DNA of 60,812 bases, filler included, from Hausera hauseri (GCA_046269625.1; 10 parts of 10 records of this genome joined end to end with filler, not necessarily neighbours in it), one strand, 5' to 3'; shown: positions 1,561 through 41,606, numbered from the whole stretch's first letter. The notes: a model not told the origin generated them from the sequence alone. Made by a program: numbers and translations.

Positions 1561-4500
1561 CAAACCCAGTCTAGCCCTTTAGTTCACTATCTCCCTTTGC
1601 TTCATGCCCAAGGCCCCTCTGTCTCTTGACCTCTCATTAAACATCACTAGCCTGTCTGTATGTATGACCTACTTTCCCCCGGCTGTGGAAAATTTTTGTT
1701 TTGGATTTTGCTCATTGTATATGACACGTATACTGTTGTGGGTGAATGTTAGTTGTATGTTAAGGGTGTGTAGTAGCGCTATGTGAATGTGTATATGTGC
1801 TATTCATCTTGGCTAGCAGTGCAGTAATGTTCTTCTTTAGTTCACACTTTTCTGTTGAACTACTCTCTTTAAAATATTGCTTCTGTTTTCCATCAACGGA
1901 ACTTTGTGTCTCCCTTATTGTCTTTTCCTTTACCATTGGTTCTCCCTTATATCAAATTTTGAATACTTCCTTGCTAAGTCTATTTTTGCTCTTAAAAATG
2001 TTCCACTGCATATTTGGCTAATACTGTAACAATATGTTCTTTTAATGTATCCTCGTTCTTTGATTTATTTATCTTATTAATTTGCTTCTGTTGGTCAAAT
2101 TCAAATTTTCATGTTGTCCTTATTCGCTCCTCTTTTTCACTTGTGGGTTCGTCATGTATCCCAGCCTTGGGTTGTTTCTCGACTGGTTCTATGCTTATTT
2201 TAATCTTTTTCTCGTCCTGTCTTCCTTCACGATATTGTACTTTGTCCACCTGTTTTTGTTTCTACTTCCTCCTCTTAATTGCGGCTTTACGTTTCACTCT
2301 TGGTTCCTCATCACTTGACCCTTCAACGTCCTGATGAACAATCCACCATTTAACCCAGGTGGCATTTAAAATGTTAATATCTTCTTGAGCTTACATGTCA
2401 GTAATGTCTGTCTGTTGTTATTATTATTTATGTTGTCCTGTTGGCGTTCTTCAGTCACTTGTTCTATGCTTCTCAAGTTGATGCACAGTTAATTAAATAC
2501 TGTTCAATTTTATAATGAAGCCGGTATACAACTCAATGTTAATTATTACCTGTGTTGTTCACTAGATCAATTGTTCATTTATAGCTAAATTTGTCAATAT
2601 ACCAATGTCTAACATTTAGTTGCTTTATCCAACTGCACAAGTCACTATGCATCACGTTGACTAGGACTCGTTGTAATATGTAAATGTTCATGCACGTGGA
2701 GTGTTTCCCTATGTCTGTATCACTCAAAATGTCTTTTGATTATTCAGTTTAACTGTGACTACAAGTATACTCTGGCTATGGATTAAGTTTCTCAGTTACT
2801 TACATCGGAAGATTGTCCCCACAACAATATAAAACACACATAATGGCAAATACCATCTCTCAGTTTTCCTCCACCTGATTGGCAAATGCGCACTTCGTTG
2901 TTCTAACATCAACTTAATTCATTATACACCGCTGCCTGCGAGACAGCTCAAATTGAAACCCCGACTTGTCAACAAGCCTGCAGTGGTTCTAATCTTATGT
3001 TCAATAGTCAATGCGCCGCCCACTATAGTTTCTATGAATTAGCTGAAGGTTCATCACCGTGATTCTAAACCCTTAGTTAACTGTCTCTGGACTATCACTT
3101 CTTTAACCTCATTGGTAAGTTTGCGGTGGTTCTAAATATTTTAATTGTTAAAGCAGTCATTTCTAACAGCCATTAGCCACTACACTTCCCCTTCTAAGAC
3201 GCTATAGACCTCAGTTTCTCTGCTTACGATGAGTGGCATTGTTAACAATGGCTGCCGATGCTCTCCGGAGAAACAAACGTTCTATAATCAGCACATATGG
3301 CAACAAATGGGTCTTCTCTCAAAGGATGTCAACAGAGGGCTTGGCTTCTCACTGACCCAGAGATAGCAGATATACTAAAGTTGTGTTCTGCTCTATGCTC
3401 TCTTCAGCCCTCGGTAAGTGTGAGGTTCGTCTCTGCTGGCTAGGGAACAAGATTGCACTCCTCGACTCAGTGCGTGAAAAAGTGTCTTTATTGCTGATCT
3501 ACTGAGATTTTTACAGTGCCCAATGCCCATTACTGACTATTTTTCTACAACTTCCCACACGCACCTATCACGTGTTCATCATACAGTCAGGGCAACAAGT
3601 TTACTAATGTCAACTTTGACAATCTGGGAATGAATTCTCCAGCAATGTCCTCAGTTTCACACCAAGAATACTGTCATTTAGTGGCTAACTATTGGATTGG
3701 GTTGGCAGGTCTGCTGTAAACCTATCAGTCTAAATGTCTAGTGTGAATACTTTCTGCCAAAAACAGGGTCTCGGGGCTCTTTTTAGTATGCGTTGGCATG
3801 AAGCAAATGTATAAAACATGTACTACATGCACTCACATCTGCACCTAGACCCTGGGAAAGTCTAAGGGGTTTCATGCAATTTCACTAAAAGTCGCTATGT
3901 CTCTAAGTCATTTCTAACCTTTGTCTAGTCCATGTTACAGCGACTGCTTTCAAGTAATCCTAAATGTCTCTACATTAATTCTGTATTCTCGCTTGTCTTC
4001 CCAATTTGAGAATCACTGTTTGTGCTACACTGTATGAGGTAACCCCTTTTTAGTGTCATATATCGTAACATTTCACGTGCATGACCTGTGACTATCCCCA
4101 TTATCTCCTGCCTGGGCATGCTGCCATTTAATTCCTTCGTGGGATAGCTGCTTATCACGTGTTTTGTGTGAACGTTTTATTCCTTTACATTTTTAGTGCC
4201 TTGGTTATCCTATCATCATCATGTGGCGTGTCCTGTGGTGTATTCTGCCACAATACCCTAGAGACAAAGAAGATTCAGGTGACCAACAAATACCTGGAGA
4301 AAGACCCATGTCAAAGAAGTCAAAGAAACAAATGCAGCATGAGGCAGGAGAAAAATAAATGCACACTGGACCGTCTGAGATGAATATTTGCAGTGAATAC
4401 CTTATGTTCTGTNNNNNNNNNNNNNNNNNNNNNNNNNNNNNNNNNNNNNNNNNNNNNNNNNNNNNNNNNNNNNNNNNNNNNNNNNNNNNNNNNNNNNNNN

Positions 4501-5163
4501 NNNNNNNNNNNNNNNNNNNNNNNNNNNNNNNNNNNNNNNNNNNNNNNNNNNNNNNNNNNNNNNNTATTTCAGGGATAGTTGAGTCCTGAAATGACGCCAT
4601 CACCATGCTACCAGAACCAGCGGACCACAGACTACACTAGCTATACATGGGATCCAAGGTCGATGGCTGTTAACCTGATTCCCAGAGTGAATAATTTCCT
4701 TAATGTTTTCTTCTGTTGTTTAGTGTGTTCGTCTTCGTATCTACTTTTTTCGGTCTGTCGAATGCCCTGTCCAAAACAATAATATTTGTTTGTTTATTTC
4801 ACTGTTTGCTCACCGAAGAAGCCATACGACAGGCTATGTAACGATTAAGTTGATAACGTTAAAATATTCCTTTTAATTAGATAACTCGTTACAATTTGCA
4901 GGAATGTTCGTGTGCCGGGACCCAGATTTACTGCATGGACCTGGGACTGCCATTTTTTCCAACGTTATCAAATAGATCTTACGGCTTCACGAATTTGTTA
5001 CTTGACGTAAGATGTCCTTTTTTCCTACAATACAAACACTATATTTATGCTGTTTTTGCTGTTTTGCATTTATGAAGTCCGGTTTGTCGTTCAGCTACTG
5101 AGTTGAGTGCTTGGAGCGACACTGTGGCTGCGATTTTGTAATTAGTCTTTAACACTACACATA

Positions 5164-5600
5164 ATGAAGAAGGTCCTAAATTTATATAATGCCTATACTG
5201 TTTATGGAAGTGAGTCGTGGACAACGAATAAGCAAATACAAAAGCATCTAGAAGTCGCAGAGATGTGTCTCCTGAGACGAATGTTAAAAATATGGACAAA
5301 GAAAAAGCCAAATAGATATGTATTGAAAGACGCTAATGCGAACAGAAGAATAATTTCAGATATAAGAAAACGACTATCAAAATTGTTCGGACATGTAACG
5401 AGAAAAGGGGGAGGGGGTTGTAGAATTTAATAACAACGGACACAACAGATGGGAAGAGAGCCACAGGAAGACAGGGGCAGAAAACTGTAGATCGATTGAC
5501 AACATGGCATGGTTAAGAAAAAAACATCGACAGGTTTGTTATCGAGCACAAGAAATAGAGAGATGATCGCCAAACCCATTAGGCAGGGTACATCATGTTG
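5164..5600 (+). mobile_element. RTE-like LINE 3' fragment
   Basis: YGSESWT...LEVAEMCLLRRMLKI.W...IRKRLSKLFGHVTRK, typical RTE RT C-terminal domain. Confidence 0.65.
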
Positions 5601-5659
5601 ATGATCTTTGCGTCTATGTCCTCCAACTGATCGAGCAATGCAGTTGCGAAAATTATAAT

Positions 5660-5800
5660 GCTGAACGATTGTTAACTTTGTATTATTCCATACTGTTTTT
5701 AATAGTTTTTCGAAAGTTGTGGCCGCCTTACCAATTGGTATGCTCATTTCCTCGTCGATATATGACATTGCTTTTATAATGGAGCCTAAGTAATTATTGA
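5660..5800 (-). mobile_element. RTE/BovB-like LINE fragment
   Basis: YLGS...IDEEMSIPIGKAATTFEKLLKTVWNNTKLT matches the ID.E...RI.KA...F..L...VW motif of RTE RT. Confidence 0.5.
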
Positions 5801-6376
5801 TAAACCTATTACAATCAAACTAAAGCCACTTTACTGGTTTTTAGCAGGATACGCACTGATACATACCATTTTAGCTGTCTTTAGTAGGATATACACTGAT
5901 ATGAAAGCCAGTGTACTTGTCTTTAGGATATAAAGAGTTGCGTGGAGATGTGTCATTGCTGTCCGAGACTCTACCAGTGGTAACGAACACTGACTGCTTT
6001 TGTGGATCGCTGTCGAAGAAACGAATATGCATTTGCCTCTTCATTGGATATTGTAACAACATGGAATATGTATATATGACATTAGAATTATGATGGAAAC
6101 GTCAGAAAGGAAAAGATGAGAAAATATAATAACACATTCAGCTGTAGAGGTGTATGTGGAGTTACTGTCCTCATTTTATTTCTTGACCAGCGGTACATTT
6201 TAAAATTATAATAATGTTATTCTCGTTGCCTTAGTAATATTGTTGATTCTAAGTTTGTTTGTTATGCTTTTATAAACACAGCCCCTCTAAAATGTTAAGA
6301 CTAGATTCGATTATGACTATGTGTTCGCTAATTCTTTTATTTTAACATTCATTTTAACTGTTGTTATTCTCAACAG

Positions 6377-7634
6377 ACGAACCACATCACTGCAGTTCCT
6401 GGAAATTGCTGTCCACTAAATCTGACAGACATTTCCTTTGCAAACAATCCAATTTCAGTTGTAGATGATACAGCTTTTGAAGGATCGACATCATCATTGG
6501 AATCATTGACGTTTTCAGGTGCTAGTTTCACTCGCATCCCTAACGCTTTTCTTGGCTTAACATCGCTTAAATACTTATCAATCACCGATACCAAGATTCT
6601 AGATTGGAACGTTGACGCCTTCACAAATGTCGGAAAAACTTTACTTCGACTTGATCTTGAAAATGTGAACTTAAGGGAGTGGCCAGTTTGGATTCAAAAC
6701 TTCACTCTGCTCAGAGAATTAAATTTGGACTATACAAATATCTCGTCTATTCCTGATGGCGCATTTGATTTGATGGTCAGTAATCTTCAAGGCTTGTCAA
6801 TCAGTAACGACGATTTAACAACTGATCCAAAAGCGATTTTCAAACTTTCAGCTTTGGAGTCTCTACATTTGGAAAACAATAAAATTAAAAATGTAACATA
6901 CGTTCCAAAATTAAGCAAACTATCAACGCTATCGTTAGAAAATAACAAAATATCAGATGCCGAGGAGCTGAGCAATGTGCTGCAAACATTTGCTGATTCG
7001 TTACTTTCTTTGGAAATCGAAAACAATCAACTTCCTGTTATTCCTAATTTGTCATTTTTATCAAAAATAGGAGGCTTAAATTTTAAACACAACCTAATTT
7101 CCAATCCGTATTTAGGATCTATACCAAATGTATATGACTTTGATTTAAGCTACAATCTACTACCTTCTATTCCCAGACTTTGTTCCCAGCTTCTGTCGAT
7201 GACGTCTTTGATTATTCCTTTTAATCGAGTAACAAGGATTCAAGCATCGGACTTTCATTCGGACATCGGCGAAATTAATCTAGGAAACAATCTTCTGACT
7301 GAGCTAACAGATGACAGTTTTCCGCTCAACTCTAGTATTTACGCCATATACTTCAACAACAATCCTATTACAAAAATCTCCCCTCAAGCTTTGAAAAATC
7401 TTCACCGGCTCCTCACGTTAGATCTACACGGAACAAAACTAACCCGGCTCCCATTACAACTGGGGTCTCTGGTCAGTTTATATAGCCTTGACTTAAGCGA
7501 TTCAGCTTACCTGGTATGTACATGTGTAGAGAAGGAGTTGGGGTCGTGGATCACCGCCCTGCAAGAGGTTAAGGGGAACTGTGGGATAATAAGCATATAT
7601 AACTTCTTTGCAAATTTCAGTTCAGCTTGTCCTG
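6377..7634 (+). CDS. Large internal exon of an extracellular leucine-rich-repeat protein (LRR array + LRRCT-like cap)
   Basis: Uninterrupted frame with many LxxLxLxxNxIxx repeats ending in CTC...W...C...CP. Polypyrimidine + CAG acceptor ends at 6376 (in frame with ORF 6497); GTAAG donor at 7635. Confidence 0.88.
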
Positions 7635-8300
7635 GTAAGGTATAGTAGTCATAAGTGTACAGGGGATCTTGGCATCCGGGGTAAGTGATACTTGCAAGTA
7701 ATTACTAGGAGAAACTTCCCCCTCCTAAATTAAGCAATTATAGTAAAGACTAGTTATTGTTCATGTTTTGATGAGACTGGAGACAATCTATCATATATTA
7801 GAACAGCCTGGGATTCTATCATCACTATCACCTTTCCCCTACCACACGTAGACTTTTTGGGAACACTGAAAGATTCATTGACGACTTCCCTGGATTTGTT
7901 TCTTTTCCGTGCTGCGTTACGTGATGCTCTGGATGTTGACATCACCATGTTCTGCAATTATGTATTAACGCCCTCTTTTCCTCCGCGAACACAGCAATTA
8001 TGTATTCGCTATCTCCATTCTCTTGAGCGCAAAACAATTCTGTATGAAATTCTGTCTTGCTCCTGCAAGGAGATTATCTCTTTGTCCCTTTTATGGAAAG
8101 AAATAGCTCACCTTCTTTTTTACAACACGGTCTGCAAAGTCTTCGACATTATGGAATGAGTGGGCGGCTTCACCGCATTTCTGTGAACACAAACTTGTAT
8201 AAATTAACTATCTACAGATAATCTGTATTCTTAATGAAGAACCCTCCAAAGATTTAGCTTGTTATTATGGATTTTTTTGGGAGGGTGTGTGGGGGGGGGG

Positions 8301-8375
8301 AGATCCTCAGTGGTCTTGAGTAAGATGTCCGCCTTAAGTGCTAGGGGTACCGGGTTCAAATCCTGGTGGAAGCAC
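8301..8375 (+). mobile_element. tRNA-derived SINE head (Pol III A/B boxes)
   Basis: A-box-like TGGTCTTGAGTAAG and B-box GGTTCAAATCC with tRNA-like spacing; too degenerate for a functional tRNA. Confidence 0.5.
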
Positions 8376-9633
8376 TTGTGATTTTTTTCTCCTGGATCTT
8401 CTAGTAAAAAACAAAAAATCACATGATCTTTGACTAGTGAGATCGGACGTCCGTGTACATTGTCGTGCACATTAAAAATCGTTTGGCAGTTGAAAATCGA
8501 TAAAGAGTTGATGATGGACAACGTCGATTCTAGGAAGATGCAGTAAAAGAAAGAGGATGCTATAGAAAAAAAAAAAATTGACAAAGCAACAATGGCTAAA
8601 CAGTAATGGAGCCAAATGTATTCTTTCTGGATTAAAAAAGAAGTCTGATACGAAATCAAAGACTTACTTGGACAGCCAGCCAGATGGCGAGCGCTTCAGT
8701 GGTTGCTTGAATTTGAATAGAAGCATATTTGGGAATATCCTTAATGGTGTATTTTTTGTTACATTTTCACATAAAGACTGTCAGCTAACGTTGTTACTTA
8801 ATTTGTTTTTTTTTTTGTAAGAAACACTTTGTATATAGAAGTATTATATTATTTCATTTGTGTCTATCAGTTACGTTTTTGTTAACTCTGCGTTTGTAAC
8901 TGTGTCTGTGTCACCGTTGTGTAATTCTATCAGTCTCGTCGCGTGGTAAGGGTAGAGAGTTCGTAAAGTTGGTAAACTTATTCAAGAAATTTTATTGCTA
9001 CGGAAACGGAAGCAAGAAGAACCACAACAGGCTGACATGACAAATCAGATGAAACAGTGGGAAACAGCGACGCCTATGGACAGGGCAAAGACATGATTAC
9101 TTGGCAGTTTCCTTTAAGCCTTACACGCCACATGGCATGAAAGAGGTTCATGATGATAATGCTTTTTAATGTTTTCCAGAGCTGTTTGAGTTCCCCCTGA
9201 CAAAGAGGCTTGCTGTTTGGGCTCCAAACTGTGGAATGTGTGACGAGGAATTGAACAGGTGTAAAACTGTACTGTCGATATCAGATTTTTCACGGAAATA
9301 AATAAAATTAGAAATCCAGCCCCTAGTCCCTGAGAAGGTGAAACCGAACATCAAATGTCTATCAGAGACGGGCGATAAACTCGGAGATCCCGAGTGACAG
9401 TTCCGCTTGTCAAAGCTCATTTTGAGTTTTAAACTCGAGAAGCCGTTACCATGGTTACATTTCAGTGATCAAATTCCCACCAGAAACATTTGACTTTTTA
9501 TTTCAGTTCTATTTTTTTCCTTTTCTCCCTAGCATCTTTTACCTTATCTACATTCGTCTATTATTGTGCACTAACTCTCCATCTCAGCTTTATTTCTTCC
9601 TCTCACTTCCTTTTACACTATGTAATTCTCTAT

Positions 9634-33357: not shown

Positions 33358-34670
33358 TAATAAAAAACTTTCCTGTTTTGATTTATTTTTTTAAACAATC
33401 TAAATAAGTGTAAATAGGTAAGATCAAGTAACGTAAGACATTTAATACATTTATTTAACTAAAACCATACGGAATTTTTTGTTTCACAACTGTATCACAA
33501 CCATTTACATTTAAAGTTTTACTAAAATTGTTCGGACCATGCACACAAGTTTTGAACATTTCTCTGTTTGCCCATATATGTTTCCTGTTTTGAGGATTTA
33601 GAGTTTTATCTAGACCTCTGCATTCGTCTGGTAATTTGGTTATAAGAAATGGTTTTGTCGGAGCATTAAATACTGCATCCATTGTATGAATAACACTGGT
33701 CGTAGGAATAATGAAATTTAGTATAATACTTCTCAATATTGCACTATTTTATATAACATTTTATGACCAATCAAATATTACCTTAATATAATTGGGGCTC
33801 AATTATGGCTCAACTATGTAATGCAATCAGTTAGCAAGTAATTAACAGGTCATTGTTGTTATTTATATAGTTGTGTGGATGTTGTACACGTGTATCAGCC
33901 GTTGGTCTTTGTGAATAGATAATCAAATGAATAAATTTATAAACTTTGACCAAATTTTGTTGGTGCAACAAAACGTAATCCGACCATTTCGGTTGAACCA
34001 ACAACATTTTATTATTTTCTTTTGGAATGGAGTTTGTACAATTTGTTATGATACATAACTCATAACCTTTCCCAGTCATTGTAGCAATATATTGAAAAGG
34101 ATACTTCGTATTGAGATTCAAAAGTCTTTATTAACAACGTTCAAAATGTTATTTTTAAAAATTTTATTAGTTATTGTGAGTTTCAAAAAAAGTCTATCAC
34201 GATTATCTGTTAACGAGATCAAGGTCATCCGGCTACTATTCAGAAACCCCCAAACGGTCGTTTTGAAACTGATTTATACGTTATGAAACAGTGTTGTTAA
34301 ATGAAAGACTACATAATCCTATGCACATATATAACAGTTAAAACCATCGTAAATATAAGTAAACCTCTAACATGAAATAACAAGTTGTGCTACAAAAAAT
34401 GATCTATAACGTTTCTTTACTGATAAAATATGGGTATTAAAATTGCATTGGTAAACATTCATAGACACCTATTGTGTTAAGCAAAATCGTTGCGTGTGAT
34501 AAATATTACAATACCCGTAACACATAACACAATACGGTAACAAATGTTTTATAACCTTTGTCAAAAAAAAGAATTATGTACATAAACTTGTGAACCTGAA
34601 AAAATAGCTTGTGGTAGGTACTACAGTGGAAATTATCTATAAGTGTAAGGGATATGTAATAGATGATTGG

Positions 34671-34693
34671 CACTACAATAACTCCCCCTTTCC
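34671..34693 (-). promoter_or_regulatory. Polypurine tract and start of 3' LTR
   Basis: Minus strand reads GGAAAGGGGGAG-TTAT-TGTAGTG downstream of integrase (PPT followed by a TGTAG LTR start); LTR end not determined. Confidence 0.65.
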
Positions 34694-35049
34694 GCGGCAA
34701 GGCGCGAACTGTAAAGATAAAACGAAATACGCAATGAACGCAAAACAAAGTAATGTGAACTAACTATACGGTCTTCCTATATACAAGGCGTTGTATTCCT
34801 TCAGATTTAGCACTATACTGTAGGTGTCGTTGAATCCGGTTGACGAGTTGATGAGGATAAAACTATGTCGGATGTCGTAGTTGAAGTTGGTATATTGTTC
34901 AGAGACGAGGAATGGGCTGGATGGGAAAATATAGGAGAAGAGGGGAGAAAAGTGGGGATATTAGTAGAAGGGATTTTAGGGGTAGGTTCTAGTAAAGGAG
35001 AAGGTGTAGGGTTTAGAGAAATGGGAATGGGAAAAGGTATTTGCGTCTG

Positions 35050-38000
35050 AAAAGGTGTAGAAGGTTTAATTTGGGGTGCATCATCAACGAAATAGGCTGG
35101 CTTTACGTTGTTGATGTGTACCGCCAGTTCCTTGCCGTCTTAAAAATAATGGCATTGTGGAAATTCAATTGCACGAGTTTGTAAGGCCCAAAATACCGTG
35201 GTTGAAAACTGCACGGCATTTGGTTTCTCAACCAGACGAATTTTGCATAATATAGATCCTCCGGTAAATATGTTCTATTGTTATTCAAGATCCTGCAGAA
35301 GAAATCTTTGATGACTAAAACAAAATGATCTTGTGCTAATCGGATAGTTTCGTCTGTCGGTGTATCTTCTAAGGCCGTTAACTCAAACAATGAACGTACG
35401 GGTGTTCCGAAAAGGGCTTCAATAGGTGAATAACCTGTAGAGGTAGAAGGGTTGTTACGCCAACCCAGAAGGATCAACGAAAGGAGAGTAGTCCAACTGC
35501 TATTGGATTCTGCGAGGATCCTCAATGACGCTTTTAGTGTTCTGTGGATTCTCTCTAGAAGACCACTCGATTGAGGGTAATACGGTGACGTGTGGATGTG
35601 GCTGATTCCTAATCGGTTAACGAGAGATTTAAACAAATTGGACTCAAACTCAGTACCTTGGTCCGTAATAATGAATCTAGGAGATCCAAATCTGCTGATC
35701 CACGTGCGTATAAAAAAGTAGGCTATTGTGTCCGTATTGGTGCTCCGTAGTGGGACGGCTTCCGGCCATCGTGATGAACGATCCATCATGGTTAAAATGA
35801 ACTGATGACCGTTGTCAAGAGGAAGGGGGCCAACAATATCAACGTGAACAGACTTGAAAAGTAATGTGCAAGGGAAACGGTATAATGGTGGCTTCAAATG
35901 TTTGGTGATTTTAAATTTCTGGCAAGCCACGCACTCCTTAATTCACGCTTGCACATCAGAACGCATAGTAGGTCATATTCCTTGCCGGTGGAATAAGAGA
36001 AAAGTCGCCTTAGCACCAGGATGATGCAAAGAATGTACACTGTTAAACGCTTGCTGTTGTAAAGATGGTGCGAGAAGTATTACGGAATGACCCGGTTTCG
36101 AAGTGTCTAAAGTCACGCCGTCAACAATTGTGCAAGACTTGAAAGATTTGAGCATGTCCCGAGATGGTTGGTTCTGTTGAAATTGTGCTTGAGTAAAGAT
36201 AGGTGAAAAGTTCATCGAAGCAACCGTTCTTGATAGGAAATCGGCAACCAAATTATTGACGCCGTTAATATGCTTTATGTCAAAGTTGAATGTCGACAGA
36301 TATGATATTTGTCGTTCTTGGAGTGAGGAAGGGTGTTTCATAACCATGATGTTTAGCAATGGCTTGTGATCGGTCTGAATGGTAAAACGGCGAGCGACAA
36401 GTGGGAAAAATGCTTCAAAGCAAGTACGATGGTTAATAATTCTCGATCAAACGTTGAATATCGAGTTTCAGGAGATGTCAGCTTACGGAAAAAAAATTCT
36501 AATGGTTGATTTTCTCCTTTGTACATTTGATGAAGTATAGCACCCACCGCAGTGGTTGAAGCGTTTGTAGTAACAATGAGTTCCGCGTCAGGCTTAGGGA
36601 AAACGAGAATGTCGACGGCCTCAGTTCCTTCACGAAGCTTGTCAAAGTTATTAACCAGGTCAGGTGTTTACTGGATTAGCTGATGTTTTTTGCCGCCGCT
36701 TAAGTGAGCAAATGGTGCCGTAAGTTCATAGCAGTACGGCATATACTTGTGAACGAAGTGTAAAGTTCCCAGAAAGCTCCTCATTTCTGATGTTGTTCGA
36801 GATAGTTGTATACTTTTGAGAGCTTCAACACGTTCTGGCTGAGGAGAATGACTGTTAGCTGAAATGGTGTGTCCTAGAAAGTTAATACGCTTTTGGGAGA
36901 AGTGGCATTTTGTAAAATTAATTTGTAAATTATGGTGGTTAAGTCGTTGGAAACAGAACGAAGGTGTTCCTCATGCTGTTTGGTTGAAGAGGAAGCAATC
37001 AAGATATCGTCGATATATGAGTGCGCGAAAGTGAAATCCGAGAGGATAGAATCAATGTGGCGTTGGAAAGTCTGTGCAGCGTTGCGTAAACCAAAAGGCA
37101 TATAAATGTATTCGTACAGACCGAAAGGTGTCGTAACGGCGGTTTTCTCAATGTCCTCAGATGTTACAGGAATTTGATGATATGCCTTGGCTAAGTCTAT
37201 GGTTGAGTATACTGTAGTAGAATTGAGCCGGTGTAGAATACCCTTAATTAATGGTAAAGGATATGCATCCATAACAGTTAAAGTGTTTTGTTGACGGTAA
37301 TCACCGCATGGTCTAAAAGATCCATCCTTTTTTGACAACGTGTAAAGGTGAAGACCAGGGCGATTTAAATCTGCGTACAATACCGGAGCGTTCAAGGTTT
37401 ATAAATTCCTCTTCGACAGCTTTCCTACGACGGGGTGACAAAGGGCGTACCTTTTGACGAATAGGTCTTTGGTGTTGCGTTATGATGTGATGAAAAGTGC
37501 TGTTTGTAGGTGTGAAAGTTCGGTCATTCTAGATTAAGCGGGGGCATGAATTGAGTATGTATTGCCGTAGGCTTGCAGGCAATTGCGAAAGATTGGATGA
37601 TGATGGTGGTGTTGAATCAATATGTGCTGTGACGAGTGATGTGTGATAGTTATTGAAATCAAGAGGGATTTAGTGTAGGATAGTAGCATTGAAAATAGTG
37701 TTTGAAGAGGTAATTTTGTCAAGTGAATGTACTGAACCAACACAATTGTTGTTGTCAGAACCAAATCTTGACTGAATATCAATATTGTCGTTAAAAAATT
37801 TACGAAATGAAGAATGCTTGTTGAAGAAAGTTGCATTACTTACAGAATGTTTGAGTATAGGCTTCCGCAGGTAGATCTTTTGCGCCTTAGCGGATATACC
37901 ATTTATTTGCTTGGTAAGATATCCAGTAGGGTTACGTTTCAGACACTGTTGTTTGCAATCAACTAAAAACTTATAGTGCGATAAGAAATCCGAACCTAAG

Positions 38001-38341
38001 ATTGCTGTGCGGACGTTAGCGACGGTAAACGTCCAATGAAATGTGGAATGGAATTTTGGTAAAGCGAACGACAATGTAGATGTACCTGAAATGTCAAGCG
38101 GTTCTCCAGAAGCCGTAAATAACAATTTAGCTTTGAATGGTGAATTTTATACGGGGAACGTGAGTGGTAGCAGAGAAACTGCAGCGCCTGTGTCGATAAG
38201 GAAATCTATGGATTAAATTGTTAGTGTGATTATCGAAGCCTTTAGTGTAAAGACTACAAAAGAAGAGTGTCGGCAGGTAATATTAAAGGAGTTGCCTTTG
38301 CCAGACTCTGCCGTGAGTACTGGCGGCGAAATCAGTTTTTT
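35050..38341 (-). pseudogene. pol: pol pseudogene (PR-RT-RH-IN)
   Basis: ORF fragments 37670-38125, 36874-37395, 36353-36547, 35973-36359 and 35103-35930. Confidence 0.92.
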
Positions 38342-39650
38342 GGATTGGTAAGTTAGGGCGATTACCTTTCAAGAAACTGGAATGTTTATCAGTAGCGTAG
38401 TTATTGTTAGTTTTATAGTTACGACCTGAAATACAATTCCGAGCTCTAGATCCGAATTTTGCATGATAGATGCAAACTATATGATCTGAGTATAGATTCG
38501 GCGAATAATATTTACAACTTGAACAACATTTATTTGCGTTGTTATTAAATTTGTCGTGGTAGTAACATACAAATGACCGCGTTGGTGACGGTGTTTGATT
38601 TCTGGAAGGAGAACGTGTTTGATAAGGTGAGGAAGCATTACGTCGATGTAAGGAAAGGTCATTCAGCTTGTCGTTGATGGTGTTGATTGTGTGTTGTAGT
38701 GCCTCATTTTCTGCGCGTAACTGATTCAATTGGTGCTCGATAGATGTATGTCGCTGACTGCCATCGGTTGTAATAGCGGCTGATATGATGGGTTGTGATT
38801 GGATTTGTAAAACTTCGTGTGCTTTATCGGCCAACTCAGCTAGTTTATCGAAGGCTGTAGAATCTTCAACAACTGTAAGCAAAGCCCTAATTTGAATTGG
38901 TAAAGCGTTAAGGAAATATCGTTGAAGTAGTTCCGGATTATGTTCCTTGGTGACGCCTAGAGTACGTAAGTGATCCAACAAAGTGCGTAGGAAATCACTA
39001 GGTTTTTGTGTCCCCATTTCGTTTCCGTTAAAGAAGCGTTGTACTATAGAGTCAATTGGTAGTTCTGTCAGTTTTAACACAGCATCGAACAATTGGGTAT
39101 AGGGGTCAGAGTGCTGAAAGATGTCCAGTAAGTTAAGGATTGAGGCCTTTATGGAGTTTGGTAGAAGGTAGAGTAGATTATTAGCTTTGGTTAACGAGTA
39201 TATAATGCCGCTGGATTGAAGCCAGAGTTGATAAAAGTGGAGCCAAGTTTTGCTAAAATTTTTATTATCTGCGATGTATTCAGAGCAATGTGAGGGTGTA
39301 TTTGTAGGTCTTTTATTAGATGAGTTAGTGTTGATTGAAGTAGGGGGATGGTTCGATTTGGAGTAGTAAAGAATGGATTTGGTTTTTGTGCTCGGCTTAT
39401 CTGTAATATCGCTGGTTGGTGAGGAAATCATACCGCCGCGGATTCTGTGATGTATATGAATACATAGAAAATAATATGAAGATGTAAGGTGTGGGAGGTC
39501 AGTTAAAATGAAACCATTGTGGGTTAAGTAGACGTCATTGTGGGCGGTAGCTTTACGAATGATGTCATATAATTGTAGTGTATCGATATAGTGTGTGATA
39601 TTTGTGGAATGTATCAATATGTTATTAGCAAAAAGGTAGATGGGAAATGA
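38283..39650 (-). CDS. gag: Ubiquitin-like domain-Gag fusion ORF
   Basis: Open frame FPIYLFANN...VYLTHNG...IHIHHRIRGG|M, capsid-like region, coiled coil, RS-rich stretch, two CHCC knuckles; a late frameshift carries it past the natural KN* end. Confidence 0.85.
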   Translation of the reverse strand, partial: SFPIYLFANNILIHSTNITHYIDTLQLYDIIRKATAHNDVYLTHNGFILTDLPHLTSSYYFLCIHIHHRIRGGMISSPTSDITDKPSTKTKSILYYSKSNHPPTSINTNSSNKRPTNTPSHCSEYIADNKNFSKTWLHFYQLWLQSSGIIYSLTKANNLLYLLPNSIKASILNLLDIFQHSDPYTQLFDAVLKLTELPIDSIVQRFFNGNEMGTQKPSDFLRTLLDHLRTLGVTKEHNPELLQRYFLNALPIQIRALLTVVEDSTAFDKLAELADKAHEVLQIQSQPIISAAITTDGSQRHTSIEHQLNQLRAENEALQHTINTINDKLNDLSLHRRNASSPYQTRSPSRNQTPSPTRSFVCYYHDKFNNNANKCCSSCKYYSPNLYSDHIVCIYHAKFGSRARNCISGRNYKTNNNYATDKHSSFLKGNRPNLPIQKTDFAASTHGRVWQRQLL

Positions 39651-39687
39651 CGTTGGTAAACAGCAAGCTGCGTAATGTGGTATTTCT

Positions 39688-41156
39688 TCATGGTTTAGTT
39701 CGTGTTTTTTCTATTGGTTGAGTCGTTGAGAACATGATTTTAGCTCGATCAGTCCCAATTGTCAAGACAAGTTGGATTCTATCAATGTGTACAGTCGTAG
39801 GTGTGTTAAGACCCAGAGATTTTCCATTTTCAGTCCGTTTGATTAGTTGTGCTTCAGGGAACCTTTTGTGAACGTCTAAGATGGCATGGGTGAATAGTGT
39901 GTCGTATGATGAATCAGTATTATGCATGTAGAATAAAATTTTTTGGAAACCCAATACCAATCAGCTAAATAATTTCCTTTTATAAAACCTTCACGAAAGG
40001 CATCGAGATGCCTCTCGGATAGATCGGGTAATATATTGAGCAGATGAACATCAGTAATTAATTGGATAGCAACATCGTCAAAACATTCAAATTTTTTGTT
40101 TCTGGACCAACTCGATTGTATTACATTTCGGTGATGGGTATGCGACGATGTATTGTTACAATTACTTATCTTGTATTAAATCGGTGTTTTATTATAATTT
40201 TTTGAATAATTGATTCTGTTTCAATAATGTTGGCATGTAGTTTCTCGTCGGAACGTTAACTATTGACGTAATGGTTCTGTATGTTGAACTTTGGTGAAAA
40301 TGTCATTCGGTTATTCGTTAATGGGTGTACGTTAGGATGTTCAGCAGGGTATGTGCGCGTGTATAATGTGAGAGCAATGATATCCTTCGTCGATTTATTC
40401 GATTGGTGATTGCAGATCGAGTAAGAACTACTATTGTCGATATTCAATATAAGTATTCGACCCTGCATCCGTGGAATATTTGTGCGAGATGAAATTCCTA
40501 TTTGTTTATAAGGAATTGATCTGTAACTGTTTTGGCCCTTTCACCATCAAAACGTTCTGGTTAATGTTCTGGTATAAACTGTTTTGAAAGATATAGAGTT
40601 CGTGTATTATATATGAAAGTTCAGTGTCATGTAAAAAGAATCCTTTGTCACCTCAAAATTATTATAAACGTCTACAGTTGTCAAAATAGCTATTCTGTTT
40701 TGACTACATTGAATATTACACAGACTATCTTTAAATGTAAAATAGGTATCGGTAATACTTTGGGACTTATTGTGGATAACAGGTAACCATTCAATATCGA
40801 TGGGTAATACGTTCGAAGTGAACGAGATGTATGTCCTCAAACAAATAAATTTATGATGCCAGTCGTTATTTTGTAATGGATACATGTTAACGAAAGGAAA
40901 ACAAGCAGAGTAAAGTAACAATCGAGTATATTCTTGATAAAAAATATTTCCAATTCACGATTAAAAAATTATCGTGACGATCGAAATCGTTTATTTGAGT
41001 TTTATTTGTGCAAGCATAATAGCTAAACAGTACGAATAAAGTATTTTTGTCTTTATTGTATCCAAACAAATTGGGATAACGAATAGTCAACTGATACGTA
41101 CAATCGAAAATTTTGGTGAATATAGTAGTTAATTCATACGAATCAAATGAACTCAA
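39688..41156 (-). pseudogene. Decayed coding fragments, possibly DOCK-family GEF (DHR1/DHR2 pieces)
   Basis: Weak resemblance only: LTIRYP..KNTLFVLFSYYAC (DHR1-like) and HKRFPEAQLIK..FSTTQPIEK (DHR2-like). Confidence 0.25.
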
Positions 41157-41159
41157 AAA

Positions 41160-41606
41160 ACCACATCGGTCATTAAATTTGTGGTCGAATACAGACCCAT
41201 CCTCTTAGACAACGTCTTCTAATCTATCAATGGTTCTTTCAAAAGGATTCAATATTGTTTGCGTTAATCCACACATTTGTGATGTCGAATCCCATCCATC
41301 ACTGCAATGGACAACAATGTTTTCGCCGGGATCAAGTTTCTGGGTAATGTAAAATGATGTTTCGAGAATCAATTGGAAGTACTTCAGTCGGCCGCCCTTT
41401 TTAAGAGGAGAAAGGAAAGACGGATATGCTTGTTTAGCGTGCCGGTATGTTTTTAAAATTTGTTCTAAAATGGATCTGAATACATAGATATATTTGATTG
41501 GTTTCAGTATTATAATGTCTTCATTGCAACGAGCTGAGAAACCTACTATTGGTTGACTGTAGCGACATAAAGCAGATTTGATAGGTTTATGGTAATAGGT
41601 CATTAC
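41160..41606 (-). pseudogene. Myotubularin (MTMR6/7/8-like) phosphatase-domain fragment
   Basis: YYH...LCRYSQPIVGFSARCNED, VVHCSDGWDSTSQMC (catalytic Arg lost), NPFERTI, HKFNDRCG; internal deletion and a stop. Confidence 0.88.

Follow-up and report, generated by a model that had tools for sequence, protein, structure and literature searches.

A ubiquitin-derived module ending in Gly-Gly precedes Gag in one clade of Ty3/gypsy retrotransposons and suggests release of Gag by host deubiquitinating enzymes

We analysed a stretch of DNA of 60,812 nucleotides, filler included, from Hausera hauseri (GCA_046269625.1; 10 parts of 10 records of this genome joined end to end with filler), hereafter the window. 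The analysed piece of it, 33358-41606, carries one degraded Ty3/gypsy-type retroelement on the minus strand, and the gag of this element is preceded in frame by a ubiquitin-like (UBL) module that ends in Gly-Gly (GG). The same arrangement recurs in one clade of Gag relatives, which suggests that these elements borrow the ubiquitin-cutting enzymes of their host to release Gag. We infer both the cleavage and its benefit, and we give the reading in which host deubiquitinating enzymes (DUBs) cut after GG and free Gag from any leader a probability of about 0.65. Among the copies listed in the initial annotation of the window, this piece holds the one at 39432. The first part of its open reading frame (ORF) is laid out as follows:

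39651..39710, minus strand: open leader of 20 codons between the stop at 39713-39711 and the first strand of the UBL module (translation)
39432..39650, minus strand: ubiquitin-like (beta-grasp) module, folded part about 39647-39438, tail R-I-R-G-G
39279..39431, minus strand: Met right after GG, then a 51-residue linker rich in Pro, Ser, Thr and Asn, predicted to be disordered
38796..39278, minus strand: capsid-like, all-helical core of Gag, starting at the family motif FFLDxxxSPxxWL, here YIADNKNFSKTWL

The frame of gag stays open on the minus strand from 39710 to the stop at 38283-38285, with an in-frame stop upstream at 39713-39711. Before the Met codon at 39431-39429 lie 93 open codons, which read ...PIYLFANNILIHSTNI...VYLTHNGFILTD...CIHIHHRIRGG and then Met, the GG codons being 39437-39432. 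The translation bears out the initial description of about 70 amino acids joined in frame to gag and ending in IHIHHRIRGG before the Met, at 39432. The nearest database relative, P0001, is 40% identical and aligns over the whole segment with two small in-frame gaps, so that indels in the module stay in frame between relatives only 40% identical. Its module ends in SRLLGG, again followed by Met.

A profile search gave 2756 Gag relatives, and the best of them carry before the core a segment of about 75 residues with an alternating hydrophobic strand and (R/K)-(L/I)-x-G-G at its end. With a local hidden Markov model (HMM) and inspection the module was found in 31 members, including members not used in building the HMM, and its in-frame conservation reaches down to about 20% identity. 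We also trained a leave-out HMM on 28 UBL segments taken from elsewhere in the family; the window copy and the three relatives nearest to it were excluded. This HMM ranked the segment of the window copy first of 133 six-frame open stretches in the piece (E 2e-4, next 0.075), with an alignment that ends on GG, and scored the window's 80 residues at 23.1 bits, compared with 12.8 bits for the best of 1000 shuffles. Judged by this conservation, the segment 39647-39432 is coding. Read mapping listed six variant sites in the UBL (three at third, one at second and two at first codon positions), which are too few for a ratio of nonsynonymous to synonymous substitution rates (dN/dS). A scan of viral contigs with profile A1 found no relative.

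Conservation within the module is highest in its R-L-x-G-G tail, while the remainder drifts. In the 31 members GG is present in 31/31, position -4 is R in 19 and K in 5 (24/31), and position -3 is L in 25 and I in 4 (29/31). The window tail R-I-R-G-G corresponds to R-L-R-G-G in ubiquitin. The initial claim that the GG site is under constraint therefore held. GG is followed by S, M, N, A, T, G, V, D, Q or K, with Pro absent from this position; in 5/31 members the residue is Met. With ten residue types at this position, Met is not conserved there as a start, and the alternative weighed in the initial annotation, that this Met is the true start of the protein, fails, as it does on the in-frame indels. 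The linker between GG and the core motif is 13-51 aa long in the family (median 21.5) and rich in P, S, T, D and N. In the AlphaFold2 model of the whole window frame (475 residues), the UBL at residues 22-91 is confident, residues 92-138, from GG on, are predicted to be disordered (predicted local distance difference test, pLDDT, <50), and residues 150-305 form a confident helical core (pLDDT 80-97).

The window segment is almost certainly a highly diverged, ubiquitin-derived beta-grasp domain. AlphaFold2 folded its 80 residues into a beta-grasp with b-b-a-b-b topology (pLDDT 83.7, predicted TM-score 0.68). The top 50 Foldseek matches of this model were all ubiquitin, UBL or ATG8 chains (TM 0.65-0.73), and comparison with UBLs by VIA gave Z 9-9.9 with a root-mean-square deviation of about 2 Å over 70-75 residues. 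Among the relatives, P0032 has near-canonical ubiquitin at the position of the module (residues 175-252; PF00240 81.5 bits, E 3.7e-23; about 72% identical to ubiquitin by eye). P0068 matches PF00240 with 27.6 bits, above the cut-off, and P0018, P0010 and L003 score 21.6-23.7 bits, slightly under it. The family profile A2 aligned with ubiquitin end to end at an E of about 1e-9, with GG in register. The control profile A3, made of diverged members only with the ubiquitin-like members left out, matched in PDB sequences ubiquitin, ISG15 and FUBI chains only (mono-ubiquitin 0.012, Ub-S27a 1e-5 to 1e-6). The ubiquitin-like fold that had been proposed initially is thus supported by structure prediction and structure comparison, and its homology by the profiles and the near-canonical P0032.

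We then placed the module on a FastTree tree of 147 Gag cores. A split marked 95* has on one side 42 rows, 30 with the UBL and 12 that are N-terminally short or cut, while the number of complete UBL-less rows is 0. On the other side are 105 rows, of which 55 are complete and UBL-less, 49 are cut and 1 carries ubiquitin (P0068). Presence and absence of the UBL on this tree need a minimum of two changes. As far as the Gag tree tells, the module occurs throughout one Gag clade, in each of its 30 informative members. The initial proposal of a lineage-wide feature was therefore confirmed (30/30) and is refined by what follows.

Within the subclade of P0032, identity is 54-67% between Gag cores and 28-41% between the diverged UBLs, so the UBL evolves faster than Gag. 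P0032 itself is 55-67% identical to its sisters in the Gag core, its Gag being the closest, and 24-29% identical in the UBL. The simplest reading is that the old module was replaced here by a fresh copy of host ubiquitin. P0068 is the sole UBL-bearing member of an otherwise UBL-less DUF7041 Gag clade and has ubiquitin directly before Gag, and this ubiquitin looks like an independent acquisition. At least three events would thus have taken place at one site, namely the old gain, the replacement in P0032 and the independent gain in P0068. Three or more events at one site argue for selection on a ubiquitin fold with a GG end right before Gag. P0068 also has a RING finger farther upstream of the ubiquitin, the two occupying residues 243-269 and 453-515.

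An N-terminal ubiquitin fold with an R-L-x-G-G end that is followed by a flexible, non-proline residue is a substrate of deubiquitinases, as in the ubiquitin-fusion precursors. In these elements ORF1 consists, in order, of a leader that varies, the UBL with its R-L-x-G-G end, a linker predicted to be disordered and the capsid-like Gag, which carries two CHCC boxes. The UBL is the first conserved module of ORF1 in this Ty3/gypsy clade with CHCC boxes of the CsRn1 group. We propose that host DUBs would cut the peptide bond after GG, and the cut would release Gag (and Gag-Pol) with a defined N-terminus, whatever is translated upstream. The leader-UBL piece would be freed as well. Such cleavage is suggested by the invariance of GG despite the drift of the module, by the disordered linker, by the module being interchangeable with real ubiquitin and by the lack of a fixed start codon. 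P0032, in which a similar Gag core goes with a dissimilar UBL, suggests that canonical ubiquitin and the diverged UBL are functionally equivalent. As to the start codon, Met was found at the first residue of the module in 0/19 members, and the nearest in-frame Met lies 11-308 residues upstream. The leader of the window copy (39651..39710) has no ATG, and there is no in-frame ATG from the stop to the UBL. This leader is not conserved with relatives, and BLASTP homology to P0001 starts at the first strand of the UBL.

Several observations weigh against cleavage by host DUBs or against the ubiquitin origin on which it builds. The window UBL, searched as 73 and 93 aa, had no Pfam match even at E 10 and none in PDB sequences. 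Since it has no match at the gathering score of 25.4 bits, the window copy was not assigned to PF00240 on its own sequence, and its homology to ubiquitin is claimed via profiles and intermediate sequences because a direct match is missing. Both AlphaFold2 alignments contained the near-canonical P0032, which may have biased the models toward the ubiquitin fold. The Ile44-patch residues of ubiquitin are not kept, and position -6 (Val70 in ubiquitin) is mostly N, H or S; with the patch lost, binding by standard DUBs may be poor. A Met stands between GG and the Gag core, or right after GG, in several members, so initiation could also be internal. Within the UBL clade, P0017, P0019, P0023 and P0026 have a predicted start 16-24 residues before the core and no UBL, and may be truncated calls or real losses. 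Finally, the relatives are cluster representatives, with a possible bias toward long ORFs.

The main rival explanation, which we consider rather unlikely, is that the UBL stays on Gag as an integral domain and that the ubiquitin signal recruits ESCRT, the proteasome or shuttle factors to particles during assembly, much as in proteins with a UBL domain and in artificial fusions of Gag and ubiquitin. The fold is well predicted next to Gag, and the drift of the Ile44-patch residues might lower recognition by DUBs, both of which would suit such a domain. A Gly-Gly at the C-terminus is seldom retained by integral UBL domains. This speaks against the explanation, since here GG is kept in all 31 members and the tail is the best conserved part of the module. 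Moreover, a disordered linker of variable length (13-51 residues) parts the module from Gag, and the long unrelated leaders would likewise remain on Gag. It is known that ubiquitin fused to retroviral Gag can replace the late domain and drive budding, but these published fusions put ubiquitin at the C-terminus of Gag and not at its N-terminus (PMC2958808).

A second explanation places the useful product in the released leader-UBL, which could be conjugatable or act as a decoy against ubiquitin-dependent restriction by the host, with the fusion to Gag serving co-expression only. We regard it as distinctly unlikely. E1 needs Arg72 of ubiquitin, and the modules have retained an Arg at this position together with a free GG; the leaders also often hold fragments of cellular proteins. 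However, neither the lysines nor the surface of ubiquitin is conserved, the UBL changes faster than Gag in the P0032 subclade, and the leaders of close elements are unrelated, which is at odds with a conserved leader function. This explanation is compatible with the release of Gag by DUBs and does not exclude it. That the stretch is an open untranslated leader with the true start at the Met after GG and a chance likeness to ubiquitin has next to no probability, since the lack of an in-frame ATG before the UBL of the window copy and of a Pfam or PDB match of its own sequence is outweighed by the in-frame conservation to about 20% identity, the invariant GG next to a non-conserved Met, the detection by the leave-out HMM and the canonical ubiquitin that P0032 and P0068 carry at this site.

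When elements are compared, their homology sets in at the UBL's first strand or up to a few tens of residues ahead of it. P0009 and P0010 are 86% identical from that point on, while the upstream parts of their ORFs are unrelated. We rejected the idea that the leaders are conserved proteins of the element, since they are unrelated between close relatives. In the intact relative L001 the UBL-Gag ORF1 spans 41-2392 and is followed by a pol ORF at 2392-5739 with RT_RNaseH, Integrase_H2C2 and rve domains (Pfam). The 1031 nt before the UBL of L001 contain 0 stops in the gag frame compared with 24 and 10 in the other frames, and the 2.7 kb before the UBL of L003 contain 1 stop compared with 40 and 53. 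The UBL is preceded by a median of 134.5 residues (n=20), and the Gag profile of the UBL-less clade by a median of 13 (n=55; Mann-Whitney p 9e-7). These stop counts per frame and the comparison with the UBL-less clade led us to reject the possibility that the long leaders are untranslated sequence left open by chance.

Several leaders (P0002/P0151, P0011, P0009, which is L003:147-2690, P0068 and P0022) bear fragments of cellular families. The families are the CNOT1 CAF1-binding region together with Rrp44 CSD1, histone H2A, the HEAT repeats of cohesin SCC3/SA, a RING finger and 5'-nucleotidase. An Atlas search with the 800-residue leader of L003 returned weak immunoglobulin-like leads only, at <0.9, from which no conclusion was drawn. 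In one public read run (organism A) the family is present in very many contig pieces. Contig depth, when summed, amounts to about 2000-9000 in the Gag core and to 300-1100 in the linker and UBL, and falls roughly tenfold, to 20-180, upstream of 39703. From this profile, the UBL is part of the repeated unit and most copies diverge from the window copy just before the UBL. No RNA run was found to contain this stretch.

A cellular fragment also lies upstream of the UBL in the analysed piece:

40887..41606, minus strand: decayed fragment of a myotubularin-type phosphatase (PF06602)

It lies 1.2 kb upstream of the UBL, matches PF06602 with E 2e-23 and 2.3e-3, and runs off the edge of the piece. It shares the strand and the frame of gag, which has a chance of 1 in 6 taken alone. 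There is an in-frame stop at 41204-41202 within continuous homology, and the catalytic motif is CSDGWDST instead of CSDGWDRT. Three readings are conceivable for it, namely a pseudogene, an exon belonging to a host pseudophosphatase, or a fragment that was captured.

We tentatively suggest, as a possibility that we do not favour, that UBL-GG may be a universal adaptor that makes the production of Gag independent of the start codon of the element itself. Whatever ORF lies upstream in frame could then be translated as a leader-UBL-Gag fusion, from which host DUBs would free Gag. The upstream ORF could be a read-in transcript, a spliced chimeric transcript of host and element, or a captured host exon. 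The homology that begins at the UBL, the open leader frames and the cellular fragments, including the myotubularin fragment of the window, are in line with an adaptor. If it were so, the 5' end of the element would be a tolerated landing site for host coding fragments, and the expression of host genes could drive the retrotransposon.

Among the closest parallels to the proposed release of Gag are the ubiquitin-fusion precursors (polyubiquitin, Ub-eL40/UBA52, Ub-eS31/RPS27A and FUBI-eS30), in which a GG-ended ubiquitin fold likewise stands directly before another protein. They are the best matches of the family profile in PDB sequences, and the GG-Met junction of 5 members is the junction of polyubiquitin repeats. 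In contrast to them, the retrotransposon module is not N-terminal, is far more diverged and has a capsid protein as its partner. Proteins of the DDI1/DDI2 type also combine a UBL with a retropepsin-like domain. They resemble the elements in that a UBL is joined to a module of retroelement type, but in DDI1 the UBL is integral, N-terminal and without a cleavable GG junction, the partner is the protease and not Gag, and there is no sequence relation to the retrotransposon module.

The closest precedent is found among cytopathogenic pestiviruses, where bovine viral diarrhoea virus (BVDV) has repeatedly and independently acquired ubiquitin at the NS2/NS3 junction, directly before NS3, and the insertions are often mosaics with other host fragments (PMC13517609). 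In both cases host ubiquitin was captured by a replicating RNA element, upstream of a protein that needs a freed N-terminus. The repeated acquisitions at the same site recall P0032 and P0068 and the host-like fragments upstream. However, the pestivirus insertions are sporadic, recent and belong to a dead-end biotype, whereas the retrotransposon module is fixed, ancient, clade-wide and diverged almost beyond recognition.

Within the retrotransposons, the Gag box CX2HX9CX3C (CHCC) is a signature of the CsRn1 clade (PMC2582038). The same CHCC box is found in the Gag of CsRn1, PwRn1, AgCR, Boudicca and kabuki, and the window element has two. The CsRn1 clade has the same order of protease (PR), reverse transcriptase (RT), RNase H and integrase, its Gag is unusually well conserved along its length, and the paper describing it makes no mention of a ubiquitin-like module before Gag (PMC2582038). 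Compared with this clade, the window copy is degraded and without a detected pair of long terminal repeats (LTRs). A full-text search, in which few subscription journals were covered, found no published ubiquitin or UBL module before Gag for any LTR retrotransposon.

The processing of Gag and Gag-Pol in LTR retrotransposons and retroviruses is generally ascribed to their own aspartic protease. If cleavage after GG is true, a processing step that depends on a host enzyme would join the repertoire of retroelements. The sporadic ubiquitin captures of pestiviruses would have in the module a counterpart that is fixed and ancient, and the module would also be a natural experiment on the drift of a ubiquitin fold with its tail kept. 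This reading predicts that Gag acquires a new N-terminus immediately behind GG, and that this N-terminus is sensitive to DUB inhibition. If the observations on the leaders hold, there would be a route for the capture of host coding fragments and for host-driven expression of retrotransposons. For the annotation of transposable elements, a Gag that starts at the first Met after GG would mean a mis-annotated ORF1 in the UBL clade.

The remainder of the window copy has the following features:

38514..38567, minus strand: first CHCC zinc box, CX2HX9CX3C (C382, H385, C395, C399), in invariant columns of alignment A4
38421..38474, minus strand: second CHCC box (C413, H416, C426), in invariant or nearly invariant columns of A4 (ORF translation)
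38283..38285, minus strand: stop codon of the UBL-Gag frame (translation)
35103..38212, minus strand: broken pol (Pfam, and tblastn with the pol of L001)

The capsid-like core gave Z 8.6-9.7 with VIA against the capsid (CA) of murine leukaemia virus (MLV), the C-terminal capsid domain of PEG10 (PEG10 CA-CTD), the Copia capsid and dARC1. For a helical domain such values are no more than suggestive. PF23055 (DUF7041) is a weak Pfam match in Gag relatives of the window copy. In the second CHCC box of the window copy Arg replaces the last Cys (38421-38423), a residue that relatives keep invariantly or nearly so, and this fits the decayed state of the copy.

The pol of the window copy matches RVT_1 (E 1.5e-23) and rve (E 5.3e-12) in Pfam. 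When searched by tblastn with the intact pol of L001, it appears as five pieces in three frames between 38212 and 35163, namely PR at 38212-37940, a piece at 37621-37328, RT at 37395-36952, RT/RNase H at 36952-36398 and RNase H/integrase at 36401-35163. The identity to the pol of L001 is 59% in RT and 43% in the integrase. Between the protease-like and the RT-like pieces, about 320 nt (37621-37940) are without counterpart in the pol of L001.

Repeat searches of the piece, including blastn with word size 7, found no LTR pair or terminal inverted repeats. The L001 contig, which reaches 1 kb ahead of the UBL and 1.4 kb past pol, likewise showed neither; the contigs may end short of the LTRs, or the copies may be truncated. 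A primer binding site for tRNA-Trp, a trait of the CsRn1 clade, was not matched at ≤3 mismatches, which is a weak negative in a copy that is degraded. The window copy lacks an in-frame ATG ahead of the UBL, its pol is frame-shifted and no pair of LTRs was detected, which makes it a non-functional relic of the UBL-Gag design.

Rfam and tRNA scans of L001 and L003, aimed at the GC-rich repeated leader, gave no match. Inside the open ORF1 leader of L001, at 92-281, a GC-rich unit of 85 nt is tandemly duplicated (95% identical, 105-nt spacing). The 3' part of the same contig, 5740-7171, is very AT-rich (GC 0.20-0.31). In the window the sense (minus) strand of the element is markedly G-poor across 34858-40400, where the plus-strand GC skew is +0.15 to +0.39 compared with about 0 outside. 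By this compositional estimate, the element extends about 700 nt past the start of the gag frame.

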